Positions 801-55,964 of a stretch of 64,000 nt of DNA are shown in pieces. Within the stretch, counting starts at the first letter, position 1. Every line of letters starts with the position of its first letter. The notes below the pieces were generated by a model, which was not told the DNA's origin, did not search any database, and worked only from the letters and a program-made list of their open reading frames with translations. The stretch spans positions 1,013,184 through 1,077,183 of the forward strand of contig BCKQ01000002.1 of assembly GCA_001600695.1 (NCBI GenBank). The letters run 5' to 3'. Position numbers and translations under genes: made by a program. The DNA is from Ascoidea asiatica JCM 7603 (lineage: Eukaryota > Fungi > Ascomycota).

Positions 801-824
801 TTTCCTAATCCGGTCACTTCAATG
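801..824 (+). promoter_or_regulatory. Composite Mcm1 site + CAATG (a2-Mcm1-like a-specific gene enhancer), distal, upstream of pheromone gene 1
   Basis: TTTCC-TAATCC-GG-TCACTT-CAATG; same architecture and 6-nt spacer as the sites at 1041 and 2753. Confidence 0.7.
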
Positions 825-1040: not shown

Positions 1041-1064
1041 TTTCCATTTTAGGTGATTTCAATG
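1041..1064 (+). promoter_or_regulatory. Composite Mcm1 CArG box + CAATG (a2-Mcm1-like), proximal, upstream of pheromone gene 1
   Basis: TTTCC-ATTTTA-GG-TGATTT-CAATG; perfect CC(A/T)6GG about 300 nt before the ATG at 1363. Confidence 0.75.
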
Positions 1065-1362
1065 TAATAAAACTAAAAATTAGAGCATTTGTCTTCACAT
1101 TAACAAGTCTCCACAAAAAACTATTCGCTTATTTTTCCATACATTGATTAACACACTCTTTAGTAAAAAACTCGTCTTTTCTGATGCGCCATTAATGAAA
1201 ATCTTTTTATAATTCATGGCAAAAAATCAATCATAATTCCTTATTACCAAAATGATATAAATTAGAATGGTTATCCATACTTCTAAAATAAAATGATCTA
1301 TATTTTTTTTTAATTATCAATTATCAATTATTATAATTATTTAACTCTAACTTCCTCTCAAA

Positions 1363-1561
1363 ATGCAATCTTCTTCAAACACTCAATCTCAAACTCCAAA
1401 AGATCAAGATCTTCCAGGTATGTAATGTCATCTCTCATTTAGAGAAATAGAACAAAATTAAAAAAATTGCTGTCTCCTCACCCTTTTGCATAGAATATAA
1501 TTGCTAACAAATACTATTAATAGATGGTACAACCGTTCCTTCTGGATGTGTTATTGCTTAA
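1363..1561 (+). CDS. MFA: a-factor-type mating pheromone precursor, copy 1; join(1363..1417,1524..1561); MQSSSNTQSQTPKDQDLPDGTTVPSGCVIA
   Basis: AAAATG start; GTATGT donor at 1418, TGCTAAC branch 1502-1508, TAG acceptor 1521-1523. The spliced 30-aa ORF starts MQ, has KD before the putative mature peptide and ends in CAAX CVIA-stop, like S. cerevisiae Mfa1/2. Paralog at 3623. Confidence 0.93.
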
Positions 1562-2752
1562 ATTATATATAAAATCCTCAGTGGGTAATTTTAAAAGATG
1601 CTTTAGATACGTTTGATTTATGATATACATTTATTTGCTATGCTACAATATTATATCTAGGGTAAATTGTTTCAAAAGCATTCCCTCATTTTTTTTTCCT
1701 CTTACTTCTTAATCTTCATTTCAAATATGAATCACAAACAATAAAACTGCAAAAATTTTTTTTTGATGAATAAATATCCTTTTTGATTGAGCGATAATTT
1801 CTTTAAGCAGTAGAATGTATTTTCATGAAAATCAAAAAAAAAAAAAACTTTTTGCTCTTCTCTGCAATTATTAAGCATATCTTCTTCTTAATACCAAAAT
1901 ATATTTACTTTTGAATCCCGAAATTGAGACCAATAATGGAGAACTAATCATTAAAAATGTTAGAGCCGGGTTTATGCAATGGCAGCACAATTTCAGCACC
2001 CACAAGGCTGGCTTTTTATCGCTTCTTTGAGAAAATATCGATTATCATCGAGAATTCCAAAATTTGATACTTTTATCAACTTATCAGCAATTTAGATATT
2101 TAGAAAAATTGTCAAATTGACTATTTTCTACATTTTTTTTGTTATGAATTCTAGTCTATTAAATAGCAAAGATTATTTTTTGGAGAATTCTTAGACTTTA
2201 ATTTATTATTTCGCAGATAATGATTTTTTTTGTAGATTAACTGCTAAAAGAGCTAACTTTTTTGTATGAGTTTGAGTAGCAAAGGTCAGTTGGCTTAATA
2301 AAAGATTATTATCCGAATATTTTTGATTAAATTTAAAAAAAGTCTACCAAGCGAATGAAAACCAACCAAGTTTATCATAAAATAGCTTAATAGTAGCAAT
2401 AAAGGGAGACTCTATCGGATAATAATAAGACCAAAAAAGCAAGAAAATTAATGTTCTAAATTCACTTGATTTCACCTTATTTACCATTATTTTAGTCGAG
2501 ATTTTTTTTGAAGAAATTAAAAACTAAACGAAATTTGAAAATTATTGATGCCACTTTTTCATTAGCTGCTTGGAAAAAACTGTTATTTTGAGAAACTATT
2601 ATGGAATTGAAGGAAAAAATGGATGCCATTTTTTGAATCAAATTCAGTTGTATTAGAACCATTAGGATCAGTAATAATTTCATCCGGAAAAATTTAGCTA
2701 ACTTTACCAGATTTTTCATAAGTAAACTTTTTGCGGATATTTCTGTTAATGA

Positions 2753-2776
2753 TTTCCTAAACAGGCACATTCAATG
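2753..2776 (+). promoter_or_regulatory. Composite Mcm1 site + CAATG (a2-Mcm1-like) upstream of pheromone gene 2
   Basis: TTTCC-TAAACA-GG-CACATT-CAATG, overlapping a TGAAACT Ste12-like word. Confidence 0.7.
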
Positions 2777-3196
2777 AAACTTTTATCTCATTAATTATGT
2801 GATATTTGAGTTAAATCGGATTTTTTTTTATCTGGTCAACGAATAATCGATTGAGTTCTCTTCAAACGGAAAATGTTCTACCAAGTAACAAAATCTGCCA
2901 AAAAATGTTTGATAAAACTTAAGCACTGGAAAAATTGAAATAGGTAAGAAACCTATGGTTACACATTAGGTGGTAAATTTGGAACAAATCAAGTTTCAGT
3001 AAAACTGAAATTCAGTTCTAGATAATTTTTAATTTCACTAATACAACTTCTTAATTTTTTTTAAAAAAAAGCCACCACAAAATATTCCAACTGAGCGTAA
3101 AAAGCAGATAGAATAATACAGCTTTTTGGGCTTTTATTTTATTCTATTAATCTATTTAGGGTTGTTTTTTTTGGCTTTCCCCAATATTTTGAAGTT

Positions 3197-3203
3197 TGAA
3201 ACA
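3197..3203 (+). promoter_or_regulatory. Pheromone response element (Ste12 site)
   Basis: TGAAACA about 420 nt upstream of pheromone gene 2; a reverse copy TGTTTCA lies at 1668-1674. Short word, could be chance. Confidence 0.45.
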
Positions 3204-3262
3204 CTGTTGAAATCCAATCCAATAACCTTATTGAGTTTCACTAGAAATTTATTGAAATGACA

Positions 3263-3286
3263 GCTCTAATTTAGGCTATTTCAATA
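3263..3286 (+). promoter_or_regulatory. Degenerate Mcm1 + CAAT(A) composite site, proximal to pheromone gene 2
   Basis: CT-AATTTA-GG-CTATTT-CAATA; same 6-nt spacer, two mismatches to the other three sites. Confidence 0.45.
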
Positions 3287-3622
3287 CAACCAAAGAGTTT
3301 TGATTTATTTTATCTCTCCTTTTTTATTTCTTAGAAATTGATTTGGCTTTGATCTAAGCAGGATGACATTAGCAAAGTTTCTTGAATTATTTTGAAACTT
3401 CAAAAAACCACAAAGAAATTGATACTAGATAATATATTTTGTGTTTTTTTTAAAAGAATCATTGATTATACAATTGATAATAATCAAAAATGATATAAAT
3501 ATTCCAATGATTAACAGCTTTTTTGTTTAATAATTTTGATTCTTTTTTTTTTAAATCATCAATTATTCAATTATTAAATTCTTATAATTATCTTATTAAC
3601 TCAATTAAACTACTTTTTCAAA

Positions 3623-3787
3623 ATGCAATCTACTTCAAACACCCAAAACGAATCTCCAAAAGATCAATCTCTTCCATGTAAGTAGTGATCAATTAGCTTT
3701 AAAACATTATACATTGGATCATTTTACTAACTAACTTTTTTCTTTATAGACGGAACTGTTGTCCCATCAGGATGTGTTATTGCTTAA
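3623..3787 (+). CDS. MFA: a-factor-type mating pheromone precursor, copy 2; join(3623..3677,3750..3787); MQSTSNTQNESPKDQSLPYGTVVPSGCVIA
   Basis: GTAAGT donor at 3678, TACTAAC 3725-3731, TAG acceptor 3747-3749; exon lengths (55+38 nt) and intron phase identical to copy 1; ends CVIA-stop. Confidence 0.93.
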
Positions 3788-7040: not shown

Positions 7041-9338
7041 ATGAAATACCCTTTTAGTTTTACATTTTTCTTTTTTTCAATATTAAATTTATCAAACGCT
7101 GCTTTTCAAAGTGGCTCTAAACAAAATATGGTTGTTTATTGGGGTCAAAATTCTGCAGGCTCTCAAGAAGATTTAGCTTATTATTGTAATCAGGATAATG
7201 TAGATATTGTCGTTCTTTCTTTTATGACTACTTTTCCAGGTACTGATGATATTCCAACTTTAAATTTCGCAAGTGCATGTTCAGCAACTTTTTCAAATGG
7301 CTTACTATATTGTGATCAAATCGAATCTGATATTTTAACTTGTCAAAATAATGGTGTTAAAATTTTACTATCTTTAGGGGGTGCTTCTGGTTCTTATGGA
7401 TTTGATTCTGATTCTGATGCTGAATCTTTTGCAGAATCTTTATGGAATTTATTTCTTGAAGGTTCAAGTGATACAAAACCATTTGGTGATTCAATTATTG
7501 ATGGTTTTGATTTAGATATAGAAAATAACATTCCTCAATATTATCCTGCTTTAGTTTCCAAATTAAGAGAATATTTTGAAACTGGTTCAAAAACTTATTA
7601 TATTAGTGCTGCTCCACAATGTGTTTATCCTGATGCTTCTTTAAAATTAGCTTTAACTGAATCTAATATTGATTTTGCTTTTATTCAATTTTACAATAAT
7701 TATTGTTCAATTTCTGGTACTTTCAATTGGGATACTTGGGTTGATTTTGCTAATGATGATTCCTATAATTCAAATATAAAATTATATCTTGGTCTTCCAG
7801 GCTCTTCATCTGCTGCCGGAAGTGGTTATACTTCTGTTGATGATGTTCAATCAACTATAGATACAATCAGTTCTGATTCACAATTTGATGGAATTATGCT
7901 ATGGGATGCTTCTCAAGGAACTTCAAATGAAATAGATGGTGAAACTTATATTGCAAAATTGAAAGCAATACTTCAATCCATTGATACTTCTTCTACTTCT
8001 TCTACTTCTTCTGTTTCTACCATTTCTTCCATATCATCTTCATCAGTTGCATCAACTATTATATCACATACTCCATCAACTACTTCATTAACTATTTCTT
8101 CTAGTATTTCTTCAACTAGTATTCAAACTATAATATCCAGCAATACTTCCCCTATAAGTTTTTCCAAATCAACGAGTGATATTTTAACATCAATTTATAC
8201 CGATAATATCCTCTCCTCATCATCATCTGACTTATCATTATCTTCTTCCTCTGAATTTTCCCAAAAAGCACATTCCACAACCACTTCATCAATAACAACC
8301 GAATCTATTGAATCCTTATCTACAAAAAAAACATCCATTTTATCTTCATCCACATTATTAGAGATTTCTACTCAAACTTCTGCTGAAGTATCCTCAGCAT
8401 CAATAACCGATTCTTTTCAAACAAACACTCAAATAAATCCTGGTACAAGTACCAATGAAAGCATTTCAAGAACTTCAACAACCTCTAATGATAATACAAA
8501 AACTACAAAACAAACAAATTCTAATACCATTACTGTAAAAACAGAATCTTCAATTTTTTCTCTTACAACAAATGATGTTCAAATAATTGAAGTTAATACC
8601 ACTTTAAAAAGTACTGATATTGCAATAGTAACAGTTACAAATTTCAATAATCAATACACAAAAACTAAAAATCCGTTAGCAACTACCATGTCAACTATCT
8701 ATTCTGTTTTTTCAGAAACTATCGAAAATGATTCTTTCGATCTGATGTCAGAAACCTTTAGTTCCAGTTTGGCAGTTACTCCGACTTCTACTGGTACAAA
8801 AGCTTCAATAACAGAAATGAATATTGGGTCACATTCCAATACTGAAACAATTCAATTAACTTTAGCTACATCTGCTATAATAACAATAACTAATTCTGAA
8901 AATTCTGTTACTGTTGTAACCACTTCTATTAGTTTAATCACTTCAATTGCTCGACCAACTGATCAATCAGATGAAATTAAGGTCACTTGCAGTTCATTAA
9001 CTGGTTTAGAACTTGCTCAATGTTTGAATGCAAACTTTCCTTCAAGTGATACAGCTGCAGATTCTGAAACATGTGAAGACGGTGCTTTCTCTTGTCTATC
9101 TGATGGTCGTTTGATAAAATGTTCTTATGGTAAATGGGTTGTTTTTGACTGTCCATCCGGTACTTCGTGTTATGCATTCACCGATACATTTGAATCTGTT
9201 TTTATAGCTTGCAACTTTGCCGATTATAAATCAGAATATACCAGTAACAAATATTCTAAGCGATCATTTGCAGGAAATTATTATCAATATAGACGTCATT
9301 TGCATAATAAGCACAATAGGGATTCAATTAAAATCTAG
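7041..9338 (+). CDS. CTS1: Secreted GH18 class III endochitinase with Ser/Thr stalk and C-terminal Cys-rich chitin-binding (CBM19-like) domain
   Basis: Signal peptide, VYWGQNS, SLGGA, DGFDLDIE catalytic motif, AAPQC, QFYNNYC, GIMLWDAS; C-terminal C..C..C..GKW..CPSGTSC. Confidence 0.93.
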   Translation: MKYPFSFTFFFFSILNLSNAAFQSGSKQNMVVYWGQNSAGSQEDLAYYCNQDNVDIVVLSFMTTFPGTDDIPTLNFASACSATFSNGLLYCDQIESDILTCQNNGVKILLSLGGASGSYGFDSDSDAESFAESLWNLFLEGSSDTKPFGDSIIDGFDLDIENNIPQYYPALVSKLREYFETGSKTYYISAAPQCVYPDASLKLALTESNIDFAFIQFYNNYCSISGTFNWDTWVDFANDDSYNSNIKLYLGLPGSSSAAGSGYTSVDDVQSTIDTISSDSQFDGIMLWDASQGTSNEIDGETYIAKLKAILQSIDTSSTSSTSSVSTISSISSSSVASTIISHTPSTTSLTISSSISSTSIQTIISSNTSPISFSKSTSDILTSIYTDNILSSSSSDLSLSSSSEFSQKAHSTTTSSITTESIESLSTKKTSILSSSTLLEISTQTSAEVSSASITDSFQTNTQINPGTSTNESISRTSTTSNDNTKTTKQTNSNTITVKTESSIFSLTTNDVQIIEVNTTLKSTDIAIVTVTNFNNQYTKTKNPLATTMSTIYSVFSETIENDSFDLMSETFSSSLAVTPTSTGTKASITEMNIGSHSNTETIQLTLATSAIITITNSENSVTVVTTSISLITSIARPTDQSDEIKVTCSSLTGLELAQCLNANFPSSDTAADSETCEDGAFSCLSDGRLIKCSYGKWVVFDCPSGTSCYAFTDTFESVFIACNFADYKSEYTSNKYSKRSFAGNYYQYRRHLHNKHNRDSIKI

Positions 9339-16110: not shown

Positions 16111-19001
16111 ATGTCCAATTCTAATATTCCAGCAGATGAGCTTGTAAGCATTTCTTCCTTTGGTGATTATAATTAAACTATCTAAATATTACATTTAATT
16201 TATTCAATCATTTACTAACAAATTGTTTTTCTCAATTTTTTTTATTATCAGATCGATGAAAATGATTTATTGAAATTTCACTGTTTGGGTGGTGGTAATG
16301 AAGTCGGCAGATCATCTCATATAATTGAGTATAAAGGAAAAACTATCATGGTAAGTTATTCACACCTTTTTTAATATTTTTCCATTTTTAATTAATTAAA
16401 AAACTAACTTATCTCCAATCTTTCAAAAAATTATTATTTTTATCCTTTTTTTTCTCTTTTATTTAAAGCTTGATGCAGGTGTTCATCCTGCTCATTCAGG
16501 TATGGCTTCTTTGCCTTTTTATGATGAATTTGATCTTGAAAAAGTTGATATTTTGCTTATCAGTCAGTATGTAAACACAATACACGTTAAATTCCTTTTT
16601 AACATACACTATAGTTTTTTTTTTCTAAAAAAACAAGTTTTGAATTGAAAATACAATATGTATTTTCAATTAAATTACTTACCATGAGTCAAATAATATA
16701 TATATATTTATATATATAAATGTATATCCCGATAGTTCTTATTTTCTTCAGAGCAAATTTACTAACCTTTTTTAATATCATAGCTTCCATCTTGATCATG
16801 CTGCTTCTTTACCGTATGTTATGAAACATACAAATTTTAAAGGTAGAGTATTCATGACACATCCTACAAAAGCAATTTATCGTTGGCTATTAAGTGATTT
16901 TGTTAGAGTTACTTCTATAGGAAATGATAATAATAATTCCGCTTCTTTGTATACTGATGAAGATTTAACTGATTCTTATGATAAAATTGAACCAATTGAT
17001 TATCATTCTACAATTGAGGTTGATGGTATAAGGTTCACTGCATATCATGCTGGTCATGTTTTAGGAGCAGCTATGTTTTTAATTGAAATTGCAGGCATAA
17101 AAATATTATTCACTGGTGATTATTCAAGAGAAAAAGATCGCCATTTAAATCCAGCTGAAGTTCCACCACAAAGACCTGACTTATTAATTTGCGAATCGAC
17201 TTTTGGTACTGCCACTCATGAACCTGTCGATGAAAAAGAATATAGACTTACTAAACTAATTCACAATACCTTGAATAATTCAGGTAGAGTTTTAATGCCA
17301 GTTTTTGCATTAGGAAGAGCTCAAGAAATTTTATTAATATTAGATCAATATTGGGAAGAACATCCAGATTTAGAGAATATAAATGTATTTTATGCTTCTA
17401 ATTTAGCAAGAAAATGTATGGTAGTATATCAAACTTATATCAATATGATGAATGATGATATTCGTAAAAGATTCCGTTCTCAAAATTCAAATCCTTTTAA
17501 TTTCAAATATATAAAAAGTATAAAAAATTTAGATAAATTTGAAGATTTTGGTCCATGTGTAGTTATTGCAAGTCCTGGTATGTTGCAGAATGGTGTTTCC
17601 AGAGAATTGTTAGAAAGATGGGCTCCTGATGAAAGAAATTTAGTAGTAATGACAGGTTATTCTGTTGAAGGAACTATGGCAAAACAATTATTAACTGAAC
17701 CTGAAGTTATTCCAAGTGTTAATAACCCTGATATTTATATACCAAGAAGAATGAAAATAGAGGAAATTTCTTTTGCTGCTCATGTAGATTTTGAACAGAA
17801 TTCTAAGTTTATTGAACTAGTTAATCCCAAATCCATAATATTAGTACATGGCGAATCAAATCCAATGGGAAGATTAAAAAGTGCTTTATTATCAAAATAT
17901 CATAAGTTTAAGAATTCAGATAAAGAAGTTAGAGTTTATAACCCCCGTAATTGTGATAAATTAGATATATATTTCAAAGGTGTCAAAGTTGCAAAAGCTT
18001 TAGGATCAATAGCTGAAATTAAGCCAAAAAATAATGATACTATATCTGGTGTTTTGGTTTCGAAAAATTTTGACTTAAATTTATTAAAAGTAGATGATTT
18101 AAGAGAATATGCAGGACTTACTACTACTGTTATTAAAGAGAGGCAAACTATAAGAATTTTATGTGGTAGAGATATTCTTTATTGGCATTTGATTCAAATG
18201 TTCGGATATGTAGAAATTTTAACTGATGACGAAAGTGAATTTGAATTGAAAGTAATGGATGATATAATATTAAGTTTAGAAAATCAAATATGTACTATTC
18301 AATGGAATAGTGGTATCATTAATGATACCCTCGCAGACTCTGTTATAGCTATTCTTTTATCAATAGATTCATTGCCAGCTTCTGTTAAATTATCTTCAAA
18401 ATTTTGTAATAATAACCATAATCATAATCATGAAAAAAGTTCAGATTTCAAATCTGAGACTCAAAATAGAAAAGTTTTTCCAATAGAGAACACAAGGGTT
18501 ATTCCGATAAAAAAGGAAGGACCAGAATCGGAAACAAATATTATAGAAAGTACTGAAGATCACAAACTGACAACAGAGGTCAAGACTGAGATTACTGAAA
18601 ATGAAGATATAGATACTGAAATGAATTCTCAATCTATCGGAGAAACAGAACTCAAAATTATCAAGAAAGAAATTGAATTTCCATTAGATTTAAAAGAAAT
18701 TCCAAAAATTCAGGAAAGTGGTAATAATACCGAAATTCTTGAGCATGCTGATTATACAATAGGAACAAGAACTCATAGAATATCTTGCTTACTTAGAGCT
18801 CAATTTGGTGACTGTTTTGAGGAAACAGAAAGTAAATCAGGATGCTCTATTAAAATAGGGAAACTTGAGGCCACTGTTAATTATTTTGATATGACTGTCG
18901 AGTGTAAATCAAATCCTTTGAAAAGTAGGGTAGAAAATATTCTCAATAGGGCGACTGTATTGGTTGCTCCTCTTGCACAAAGGAGGAAAGTAGTTAGTTA
19001 G
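16111..19001 (+). CDS. YSH1: CPSF73 pre-mRNA 3'-end endonuclease; join(16111..16143,16252..16350,16469..16566,16784..19001), 815 aa
   Basis: Upstream exons encode [18 protein letters not shown] and SH|FHLDH (metallo-beta-lactamase motif); donors GTAAGC, GTAAGT and GTATGT with branch points; beta-CASP motifs AGHVLGA and FAAHVD. Confidence 0.95.
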
Positions 19002-22583: not shown

Positions 22584-23002
22584 TTTGGTTAATACTTGAA
22601 ATTATTTGAACAAAATAATTCTTGGTTACTATATTTGAGTAAGCAAGTGATAATTCTAGGTGTTGATTCTACACTGTGTTAATTACAATTCTATCAAGGT
22701 GCAGTACGTTAGCAATTTCCGCACCATTTGATTGTTTAATTCGTTTTTAATCTAGTATTTCCTGTGCACGGAACTGCGGAAAAAAATTACATTTTTTAAA
22801 AAAATCACCGAATTTGTAAGTTTTCTTAAGTTTTTATTAAAGGATAAAGGATATGACATATTTATATAAAGTAGAAAAGGTTAAAAAAAATATTATTAAA
22901 AATAGAAATAAAGAAGAGAAAACAAAAAAAGAAAAAAAATCATCAGATAAAATTTTGATTATTAGTTGTTATATATATATCATTCTGTCGATTAATATAC
23001 TT

Positions 23003-23452
23003 TCAACTATTATTTTCTTCGGTATTGGCCAAATGAACAATTATTACAGTATCACCTCTGAGGAACATTTTACTAACAAATCTTTCTTTTGAAACAGGTT
23101 TTAATTTCTTACCTTGAGAACTTCTTGGAGTTTCAGTCCAAAGTTCTTTAACATTTTCTAAAATCATGTTTGAATGCCTATCAAATGCTTTTACTCTTGC
23201 CATTAATTTATGATTATTTCTACAACTTATTATTACCACAGCATGAGTTTCTACAGCTTCTTTTAGCAATGACATGGGACCATGAGTAAATTCATACTCT
23301 TCAAGCTGTTGTAATTCCAAATCAGTTAAATCTTCACGAGGTTTATCAAGTAAATCACTTTAAATAAAAATATAGAAAAGTTAGTAATTGAAATGATTAA
23401 AAAAATATGCTCATTTGCATACTTTCAATTGATAAATGTATACATACGCCAT
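23003..23452 (-). CDS. SMD2: Sm core protein D2; join(23452..23448,23357..23003), 119 aa
   Basis: 5-nt first exon ATGGC, GTATGT donor, TACTAAC 23386-23380, AAG acceptor; [39 protein letters not shown]. Confidence 0.95.
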
Positions 23453-24386: not shown

Positions 24387-24529
24387 TTAGTATGAATTTC
24401 CATGTTGTTGTTGCTGTTGATCAGGATAATAAGCTGGAGGATAACCTTGGACATTAGGCATATAATTTTGATTAACAGGAGGTTGTATACCCATATTATT
24501 AGGGTACTGACCAACAGGCTGTTGTTGTT

Positions 24530-24560
<31 letters not shown>

Positions 24561-25079
24561 TTGAGCCAGTTGCTGTTGAACCAGTTGTTGTTGTTGCTGT
24601 TGTTGTTGAGGTGGAGAAGCAACTTGATCAGGAGTCTTTTGATCATTTGGCGCACTTTGATTATTACTTCCATCATTTTGACTTGAAACTTCATCTTCAT
24701 CAGGGCTTGGATCTTCAGGAGCATTAAGACAAGCTTGAATTAAATTTTTACCTTCAGCTTTAGTAACTAAAGGTTGCAATTTTGGAGTTGTAAAGGTATA
24801 TACTAAACCAGTTTCGGAAACAACTAACAATAAAACTTGAGTACCAGTTAATACAGATAATTCATAAGCTTTTTTCATTATACCAGCTTTTCTTTTTGAA
24901 AAAGTAATATGACGTCTTGATTTATCTTGAATGAATTTAATTTCAATTTTTCTTCTTTCTTTGGTCAGTTTACCACCAGTTGAAGGAGTTTCATCATCAG
25001 CTTCATCATCTTGAGGAGTATTATCAACAGGAGCTTCCTCTTCTTTTTCGTCCTTGAATTTTTGTTCAACTTCTGACAT
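24387..25079 (-). CDS. MCM1: SRF-type MADS-box transcription factor with poly-Gln tail
   Basis: KERRKIEIKFIQDKSRRHITFSKRKAGIMKKAYELSVLTGTQVLLLVVSETGLVYTF..NLIQACLNAP. Confidence 0.97.
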
Positions 25080-53546: not shown

Positions 53547-55964
53547 ATGGAAAATAAACCAAATACAATTAAAATGGAATCAAAAACTTTACATGAAACT
53601 ATATCTAATAGAATACATAAGACTTCTTCAGGTAGAATTTTTGCCCAAGATTTAAAAAATATATTTTCAATGCTAATAATATGTTTAGATTTAACTGAAG
53701 ATAAACCAATAACAAAACAAAAAAAATTTACTTTAAAATCTTTAACATCTAAGCATTATCCATATTCTTTTCTTTTAAACACTGCTGTAGAAAAAATGTC
53801 AAACTTATCTTTAAATGTTACTCATTCAAATACAAGTACTTCTATATCTTATCAAATGAAAGCAGATTTAGCTACAAGTTTAATCAAAGATTTCTTTCAA
53901 GCAAAATTTCTCCATACTCCTGCTGATAGAACTCGTTCAGAACCAAAGGATACTGTAGCTTTACAACCAACTCCAAAAGGTGTTGCAATCGTTTCAAATT
54001 TTTGTCGTCAACATGGTATTAAAGGTGATAATATGCCAATAATTTTAAAATCTAGTTTTAATTCAATGAGTTTAACTTATTTTGATAGAAGTTCTCAAGA
54101 GGATAAAATTATTTATTCTGATTATTTAATACATTTTGTTTTTGCAAAAATTATGGGTAATTCTCCAAATATTTGGAGCCCATTAAATGATTCTGATCCA
54201 ATTCCTGATTATATTTCAAAACAAATTTTAGAAGATGAAGAATTATCTGGTTTTAATAATTTATTAGATTTTGTTGGTTCAACATCTGATGGAAATAGTA
54301 ATGAAGAAGCAATGACTTTTGATGATATTTTTAAAACTCAAACTCAAGCTCCAAAAACAAGTATTGATATTAAACCAAAATCTCATAAATTAATTCCAAT
54401 GGCTCAATATTTCAATAATTCAAATTCAGCTCAAGTTAAAATATCTCCATTTGCTCATAAATATTTCACAAATCCAGAATCTGATTCTCATACTCAATAT
54501 TATGTTTCTGAAACTGGTGTAAGAGTTGCTCAAAATCGTTGTTTCTCAAGTGATCCTAATCAACCTGATTTAAATGATATAAAAATATCATATTGTTTTA
54601 TTGGAAAAGCAATTTGGCAATGGTTAATGGATTGTACTGATTTAACAACAAAAGATCAAGCTGGTGATATTGCAAATTTATTTGTTAAATTTAATCTTGT
54701 TAAACCAATTGAATATTATCCTTCAACTGCTCCAAAATTAGGCTTTCAATTATCGAAAACTGCTTATTATACTCCAACTGAAGAAGGCTGGAAAATTATA
54801 AGATGGAATGAATCTTTAAATTCAGAAGGTAAAAATACAATAAAAGAAAGAAAAGAATTAGGAAAAAGATTACGCAATTTATCTAAAACTCCTTCAGTAT
54901 TGGCTTCAAATGGTGATGAAGCAAATACTTTAACTTTACCAAAACCTGCTTTTAACTATGATAATACTTCTTTGAAGAAACTTTTAAAAGATCCTGGTTT
55001 AAAATACCTTTTTAGAAAACATCTTGAAAATGAACTATGTGTTGAAAATCTTGATGTATATAATGAAATTTCAAAATTTAATTCTCAAATGGCTAAATTA
55101 AAAAAATATCTTAAACAAAAAGAAGATGAGAAACTGCTATATCTAAATAATCCTTCTCCTATTAATGATGAATATTCAATGCTTCCAGATGTCACTTCTA
55201 AATTCACATCAACCTCAAGAACCAGACAAAAACATGGTAAAAAACTGAGTTTCCAAAAAAGAAATAAAATGATAATCAGTTTAACAAATGAATGTATGAC
55301 TGCTGCTTATAATATATATGGAACATATTTAGCTATTGGTGCACCATATGAACTAAATATAAATCATGGAACAAAACAAGATATCAATGGAGTTATGATG
55401 CATCCAGATTCTCCTGTAAATTATACTTCATCTCCTGTATTTGCAAAAGAATTTCAATTGAGTTCTTCCCCAAGTGATACTCTGATAAACCAACTTCAAG
55501 TTAACTTACTTACAGAAAATGAGTTTACTAGACCAGAAGAAGAAGTTGCTAATTCTGTTCCACATAAACTCAACCAAATACCAAATTACGAAGAAGATTC
55601 AACAAAAACTAAACATAAAAAATCATTATCTTTGAATATAGATGTTGCCAAAAGTAATCATCATAGAAATGTCAAACTGGAAGCATGTAGTGTTTCTTCA
55701 GATTCTGACTCTGGTTCAGAGTCTACTTTATCAAGTTCTTCCCAAGCAGAGAAGTTTTATAAAGTAGAAACCACCTTAATTGAAAGGGAAATTCCATTAA
55801 CACCAACTGAAGAAACAGTTAAAGGAAGTTTATTTGTCCTTAATAATATATTTCCATTGTTTAATAAAGTTGCTGAACATATGTACAGACTTATGGAAAT
55901 TGATTCTCTTCCTAAATTCTTTAAGTCAGATGTTTACATAGAATCCAAATATATGATAAAATAG
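53547..55964 (+). CDS. SST2: RGS protein of the pheromone pathway (DEP-DEP-RGS)
   Basis: HTPADRTR..P....LQPTPKG, F.NPESDSH.QYYVS, QWLMDCTD, DPGLKYLFRKHLE.ELCVENL, LME.DSLPKF. Confidence 0.95.
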   Translation: MENKPNTIKMESKTLHETISNRIHKTSSGRIFAQDLKNIFSMLIICLDLTEDKPITKQKKFTLKSLTSKHYPYSFLLNTAVEKMSNLSLNVTHSNTSTSISYQMKADLATSLIKDFFQAKFLHTPADRTRSEPKDTVALQPTPKGVAIVSNFCRQHGIKGDNMPIILKSSFNSMSLTYFDRSSQEDKIIYSDYLIHFVFAKIMGNSPNIWSPLNDSDPIPDYISKQILEDEELSGFNNLLDFVGSTSDGNSNEEAMTFDDIFKTQTQAPKTSIDIKPKSHKLIPMAQYFNNSNSAQVKISPFAHKYFTNPESDSHTQYYVSETGVRVAQNRCFSSDPNQPDLNDIKISYCFIGKAIWQWLMDCTDLTTKDQAGDIANLFVKFNLVKPIEYYPSTAPKLGFQLSKTAYYTPTEEGWKIIRWNESLNSEGKNTIKERKELGKRLRNLSKTPSVLASNGDEANTLTLPKPAFNYDNTSLKKLLKDPGLKYLFRKHLENELCVENLDVYNEISKFNSQMAKLKKYLKQKEDEKLLYLNNPSPINDEYSMLPDVTSKFTSTSRTRQKHGKKLSFQKRNKMIISLTNECMTAAYNIYGTYLAIGAPYELNINHGTKQDINGVMMHPDSPVNYTSSPVFAKEFQLSSSPSDTLINQLQVNLLTENEFTRPEEEVANSVPHKLNQIPNYEEDSTKTKHKKSLSLNIDVAKSNHHRNVKLEACSVSSDSDSGSESTLSSSSQAEKFYKVETTLIEREIPLTPTEETVKGSLFVLNNIFPLFNKVAEHMYRLMEIDSLPKFFKSDVYIESKYMIK

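Follow-up and report, generated by a model that had tools for sequence, protein, structure and literature searches.

The window (the whole 64 kb stretch of Ascoidea asiatica DNA that was analysed) contains a tandem pair of short genes on its forward strand (Table 1), with spliced models that each encode a product of 30 amino acids ending in PSGCVIA-stop. The pair lies exactly where the original prediction had placed two 30-codon genes with exons of 55 nt and 38 nt and phase-1 introns of 106 and 72 nt. When read unspliced, both genes reach a stop after 20 codons without a CaaX box, and none of the alternative acceptors within them gives a CaaX ending: going by the sequence, the CaaX box is reached only after splicing. 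Both introns appear to be U2-type spliceosomal introns of the budding-yeast kind, with splicing predicted from their signals, and that of copy 1 interrupts the fourth codon of the predicted mature peptide; the 30-residue products exhibit a polar N-terminus and no signal peptide. The claim that the exons are conserved whilst the introns have diverged also holds: copies 1 and 2 share 45/55 positions in exon 1 and 29/38 in exon 2, with a pN of 0.15 versus a pS of 0.41, whereas the introns differ in length as well as in sequence (some 62–67% of aligned columns match). A strict scan for spliced CaaX micro-ORFs over the entire 64 kb returned exactly these two genes, against a chance expectation of 0.03 per window (mean of 100 Markov simulations). 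DNA contigs from three runs (two studies) cover most of the stretch and agree with it throughout, leaving small holes in X1 and with no single piece covering the whole stretch, and a clean intron-skipping joint was not found in the DNA contigs of these runs. The window probably contains two more spliceosomal introns, both with canonical signals that match those of the MFA introns: one at 16567-16783, just upstream of a YSH1/CPSF73 ORF that itself lacks its N-terminus, and one at 22816-23097.

Table 1. Features of the MFA pair and further family copies in A. asiatica; positions without a contig name refer to the window.
Feature	Position	Strand	Remarks
Copy 1 distal operator	804..824	+	Mcm1-type CC-N6-GG, 5-bp spacer, TCAATG; putatively a2-Mcm1-like
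Copy 1 proximal operator	1044..1064	+	Same build: CC-N6-GG, 5-bp spacer, TCAATG
Copy 1 TATA box	1256..1261	+	-107; position conserved across copies
MFA copy 1 exon 1	1363..1417	+	55 nt; pro-region, KDQ site, first 3 residues of predicted mature peptide
MFA copy 1 intron	1418..1523	+	106 nt, phase 1, donor GTATGT, acceptor TAG
MFA copy 1 branch point TGCTAAC	1502-1508	+	17 nt from intron end
MFA copy 1 exon 2	1524..1561	+	38 nt; CaaX (CVIA) 1547-1558, stop 1559-1561
Copy 2 distal operator	2756..2776	+	CC-N6-GG, 5-bp spacer, TCAATG
Copy 2 degenerate proximal operator	3266..3286	+	Two mismatches; aligns with proximal site of other copies
Copy 2 TATA box	3494..3499	+	-129
MFA copy 2 exon 1	3623..3677	+	
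MFA copy 2 intron	3678..3749	+	72 nt, phase 1, donor GTAAGT, acceptor TAG
MFA copy 2 branch point TACTAAC	3725-3731	+	20 nt from intron end
MFA copy 2 exon 2	3750..3787	+	CaaX at 3773-3784
Complete MFA copies	window (two), C20, C36 (two), C44, C58		
MFA copy cut by contig end	C36:58237		
MFA pseudogene	C66:1246 (L012:1246-1330)		

The pair belongs to a larger family, with seven complete copies, one copy truncated by a contig end and one deletion pseudogene in the A. asiatica genome. The original prediction had spoken of the pair as the a-pheromone locus and had proposed a double deletion amongst its tests: with two of about nine copies lying in the window, the pair is not the only such locus and a double deletion therefore could not refute the a-factor reading. 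The intron donor follows the identical base in all family copies, and all seven complete copies share the intron position, a GTA[T/A]GT donor, a CTAAC branch point 16–30 nt from the acceptor, a YAG acceptor and a restored frame. GCVIA-stop is invariant, with CVIA-stop following splicing in 7/7 complete copies; since no further CVIA-stop ending was found in the genome in any frame, there is no intronless copy of the CVIA type in A. asiatica. Summed contig depth over exon 1 amounts to roughly 8–10 times single-copy and agrees with the copy count, this being a rough figure and depth not being copy number. In the pseudogene on contig C66, half of the intron and exon 2 have been deleted at a short repeated word (microhomology), a junction that is also present in independent DNA runs; this copy exhibits neither an operator nor the TATA box conserved in the other copies and contains a newly acquired CTG, a codon that A. 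asiatica rarely uses, whilst its exon 1 variant is seemingly present 2–4 times as judged from contig depth. An origin of the extra copies as alleles or haplotigs is unlikely, because their flanks differ by 20–30% and read depth fits separate loci; a whole-genome hybrid is disfavoured by the single STE2, and expansion driven by transposons was rejected, as eight flanking ORFs showed no Pfam matches except for a sugar transporter. Several of the copies outside the window sit on small gapped contigs. At C36:53952-58311 (L034), two type II copies form a 99% identical inverted repeat that encloses a carboxypeptidase Y-like gene; the repeat measures at least 298 bp and is truncated where the contig ends. 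In two pairs of copies (window 3623 with C36b, and C20 with C58), 1/18 fourfold sites differ between the exons and the introns are only ~70% alike, a contrast that hints, on few sites, at gene conversion limited to exons or at codon bias.

The ends of the 12-residue mature peptides, and with them the exact cut, are predictions obtained by aligning the precursors with those of A. rubescens and with the N21/Y22 cut of S. cerevisiae. This affords four distinct predicted peptides: DLPDGTTVPSGC for window copy 1, SLPYGTVVPSGC for window copy 2 and C36b, DLPSGTTVPSGC for C36a and C44, and DLPPGTTVPSGC for C20 and C58. Position 4, the codon split by the intron, is the most variable and takes four residues. 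The peptides fall into type I (DLP[D/S/P]GTT) and type II (SLPYGTVV), with one gene of each type in the tandem pair, and are fairly polar, type I lacking an aromatic residue. The putative cleavage site, KD[N/Q], lies 12 residues before the Cys; the window copies exhibit KDQ rather than KDN, as do 5/7 complete copies overall, with KDN present in two paralogs and in A. rubescens. The precursors of a-factor are typically about 30–40 aa long, with an Axl1/Ste23 site 5–20 residues ahead of the Cys, and Asn usually occupies P1 of the known Axl1 sites; a published table of yeast a-factor candidates contains 11 instances of KDQ, including candidates from other yeasts.

Comparison with Ascoidea rubescens provides a homolog of the pair. 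The dehydrogenase gene neighbouring the pair has its best match in this species (62%), and ten kilobases from the ortholog of that gene lies an intronless 29-codon ORF (L064:12151-12240), which gives a gap-free alignment with the KDN-type copies over the part that runs from KDN through to the stop (12/18 residues identical). The window and the surroundings of the A. rubescens ORF have GOR1, CTS1 and one more gene in common, albeit in shuffled order, and the genus probably had its ancestral MFA site at the window locus. The window CTS1-like chitinase (7041-9338(+)) exhibits a long Ser/Thr stalk and a CBM19 domain, and its A. rubescens ortholog was called at only 362 aa. The A. rubescens ORF and two paralogs are the three a-factor candidates given for that species in a survey of 332 genomes (10.1101/2021.09.28.462209, Supplementary Table 1), the table of which has no entry for A. 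asiatica. As had been anticipated for scans of unspliced CaaX ORFs, the A. asiatica genes were thus overlooked because they are split by an intron: the survey is blind to introns and also demands Asn before the mature peptide (10.1101/2021.09.28.462209). Introns are absent from all three A. rubescens genes and from most of the yeast MFA genes known, which makes a single gain in the A. asiatica line, prior to family expansion, the simplest history; loss in A. rubescens would be the less simple alternative.

Upstream of all eight non-pseudogene copies, at least one element consisting of an Mcm1 box, five bases and T[CG]AATG is found within 1 kb with at most one mismatch, and the region upstream of the A. 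rubescens MFA homolog contains one such element in reverse orientation. The strict form of this operator pattern gave 14 matches genome-wide versus none for a reversed control (8/14 upstream of intact MFA copies and one in a duplicated promoter fragment), whilst a looser form gave 28 matches versus five. The enrichment at MFA promoters is partly circular, because the pattern was derived from these very promoters, and the independent operator evidence consists of A. rubescens and the contrast to STE3 only: in both STE3 promoters, as well as in the A. rubescens STE3 promoter, these two boxes stand three bases apart. Going by its motif, the MFA operator is a putative a2-Mcm1 site. The spacing of 5 bp versus 3 bp would fit activation of a-specific genes by a2-Mcm1 and of alpha-specific genes by alpha1-Mcm1 (PMC5588923, 10.1101/565234). 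Further exact matches lie at C1:152931(-), C1:393696(+), C8:148539(+), C12:388993(+) and C45:9(-) and likely belong to other a-specific genes; that at C8:148539 precedes a full-length ABC transporter, possibly STE6, and C45:9(-) perhaps marks another MFA copy beyond the contig end. Neither STE2 nor the M16 peptidase genes showed an exact operator nearby, and Ste12 sites are not conserved across the MFA promoters.

The genome contains two STE3 genes (L042:1471-2850 on contig C1; L043:1471-2805 on C4), both with intact ORFs, as opposed to a single STE2. The two Ste3 paralogs are 78.5% identical over 298 residues and arose by a duplication later than their split from the A. rubescens Ste3 used for comparison (100/100). 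Their extracellular loops differ at 39% of positions versus 16% elsewhere, a ratio of 2.4 as compared to 1.4–1.6 in five other pairs with loop boundaries being estimates, and the pS of 0.29 for the STE3 pair stands beside 0.27–0.41 between MFA types I and II (~22 sites). Our literature search, a weak negative, found no yeast precedent for a STE3 duplication. Three M16 (insulinase-type) peptidases are encoded at C1:2117946, C1:2154747 and C8:88282, and a candidate enzyme for cleavage at KDQ may be among them; in S. cerevisiae, the M16 peptidases of this step are Axl1 and Ste23. The candidate for Ste6 is a 1644-aa ABC frame at C8:149900, behind the C8:148539 operator. A second ABC transporter of full-length type was observed nearby at C8:135037-137889(-), its two membrane domains lying in different frames (intron or frameshift). 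The ABC transporter beside the A. rubescens MFA gene was rejected as STE6, being of the Ycf1/MRP type (TMD0 domain; best match Ycf1). An MCM1-like SRF/MADS-box gene (24387-25079(-)) and an SST2-like RGS-DEP gene (53547-55964(+)) share the window with the MFA pair, probably by coincidence. Strain JCM7603 is a heterothallic a/alpha diploid (PMC6692504).

Taken together, both window genes very probably encode a-factor precursors of A. asiatica. The a-factor identity put forward in the original prediction is strongly supported by the A. rubescens homology, the shared neighbourhood, the CaaX box, the KD[N/Q] site 12 residues before the Cys and the a2-Mcm1-like operators, and the genes appear to fit the a-factor family in every sequence feature tested except for the Asn. 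The MFA genes would be activated in MATa cells by Mata2-Mcm1, bound to the operators that lie upstream of them, and removal of the intron, the need for which is evident from the reading frames, would lead to the CaaX box. Following the S. cerevisiae pathway (PMC2134810), the Cys of CVIA in the 30-aa product would then be farnesylated, VIA lost and the Cys carboxymethylated, prior to N-terminal trimming and a cut after KDQ by an Axl1/Ste23-type protease to give the 12-mers DLPDGTTVPSGC and SLPYGTVVPSGC, which a Ste6-type ABC transporter would export towards the Ste3 of alpha cells. Entry of the intron was most likely a single event in the A. asiatica line, ahead of the expansion to about nine dispersed copies, and the extra copies would mainly raise the pheromone dose.

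Other explanations of the pair have to be weighed against this one. That it represents a chance repeat or an assembly artefact can be dismissed with near certainty: although small gapped contigs carry several of the other copies, this idea is refuted by the simulation, by the family comparison and by the independent DNA runs that support the stretch, with the rough exon 1 depth pointing the same way. A farnesylated microprotein family with a role outside mating is very improbable, even though the polarity of the predicted peptides and the missing aromatic residue in type I would suit it and the A. rubescens genes are themselves only candidates, since CVIA-stop endings are confined to this family in the genome, the precursor layout matches that of S. 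cerevisiae MFA1 (N21/Y22 cut, 12-mer) and the operators are of the mating-type kind. It is also quite unlikely that, within an a-factor family, the two KDQ copies of the window are silent or inefficiently processed and active pheromone comes solely from the KDN copies on other contigs. The preference for Asn at P1 of known sites and the decay already seen in C66 speak for such a situation, but the five KDQ copies retain intact frames, splice signals, TATA boxes and operators, pN lies below pS between the two types, and KDQ is found amongst the candidates of other yeasts.

A further possibility refines the a-factor reading rather than replacing it: type I and type II a-factors could be distinct ligands, each preferred by one Ste3 paralog. 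In that case, a single ascomycete yeast would possess a doubled lipopeptide channel, made up of two a-factor classes that have diverged and two Ste3 receptors that diverge along with them and differ in the ligand they prefer; the codon for the key variable residue would be the one split by an intron specific to this lineage. Consistent with this are the STE3 duplication itself, later than the split from A. rubescens Ste3, with both ORFs intact and identical promoter elements, the concentration of differences in the extracellular loops, the resemblance of the STE3 pS to that between the MFA types and the presence of one gene of each type in the tandem pair. However, loops are variable in all pairs, their boundaries are estimated and the ratio depends on divergence; the MFA pS rests on about 22 sites, the A. 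rubescens copies likewise vary at position 1 and relaxed constraint after duplication accounts for the same data. The data thus allow for a doubled channel but do not show it, and we consider it improbable.

On the a-factor reading, the A. asiatica MFA genes close a gap in the published catalogue of yeast pheromones and provide a concrete case of how entire species escape single-exon, Asn-requiring filters; scanning for spliced CaaX ORFs could bring to light the pheromones of other genomes that are still blank. The family yields peptides that can be synthesised, together with a clean contrast in operator spacing between a- and alpha-specific genes in a heterothallic CUG-Ser2 yeast. Should the Ste3 paralogs indeed discriminate between the peptides, they would offer a natural test case for the diversification of a stringent pheromone-receptor pair, which is a standing question in fungal speciation. 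Intron-bearing pheromone genes, multi-copy MFA families (which are common) and a tandem MFA pair were already known; new are the a-factor identification for A. asiatica, a budding-yeast family in which the intron of every copy interrupts the mature peptide and from which four peptides are predicted, and the occurrence of these four predicted a-factors alongside a duplicated STE3.

Amongst known systems, the A. rubescens candidates share the MQ start, the KD[N/Q] site, the 12-residue mature region, the P-x-G-T core, the CVIA end and the operator, with one gene in the same neighbourhood, but comprise three intronless genes that are all KDN, as opposed to about nine copies in A. asiatica that are all split by an intron and mostly KDQ, and the second half of the peptide is different. 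The precursors of S. cerevisiae MFA1/MFA2 end in CVIA, as in A. asiatica. They are likewise short, have a polar pro-region and are cleaved 12 residues ahead of the Cys that becomes prenylated (N21/Y22, PMC2134810), yet they stem from two genes without intron, serve one receptor and have an unrelated mature sequence; their genes are controlled by alpha2-Mcm1 repression and not by a2 activation (PMC5588923). Saccharomycopsis fibuligera, also of the order Ascoideales, possesses a tandem pair (MFA1/MFA2) encoding two slightly different peptides, although these differ by one residue and no intron has been reported (PMC5106798). The MFA family of Wickerhamomyces anomalus has at least seven paralogs and a composite Mcm1 and HMG-type site, but no intron has been described and regulation was tested there whilst it is predicted in A. 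asiatica (10.1101/565234). Published farnesylated-pheromone genes with introns are those of S. pombe (mfm) and Yarrowia lipolytica MFA4, which single-exon scans would miss in the same way; in Yarrowia the intron is found in one of four copies and leaves the mature peptide unchanged, and the S. pombe M-factor and its receptor Map3 are invariant across 150 strains (PMC6342294). In A. asiatica, by contrast, the intron is present in every copy and lies inside the mature peptide, of which four versions are predicted.
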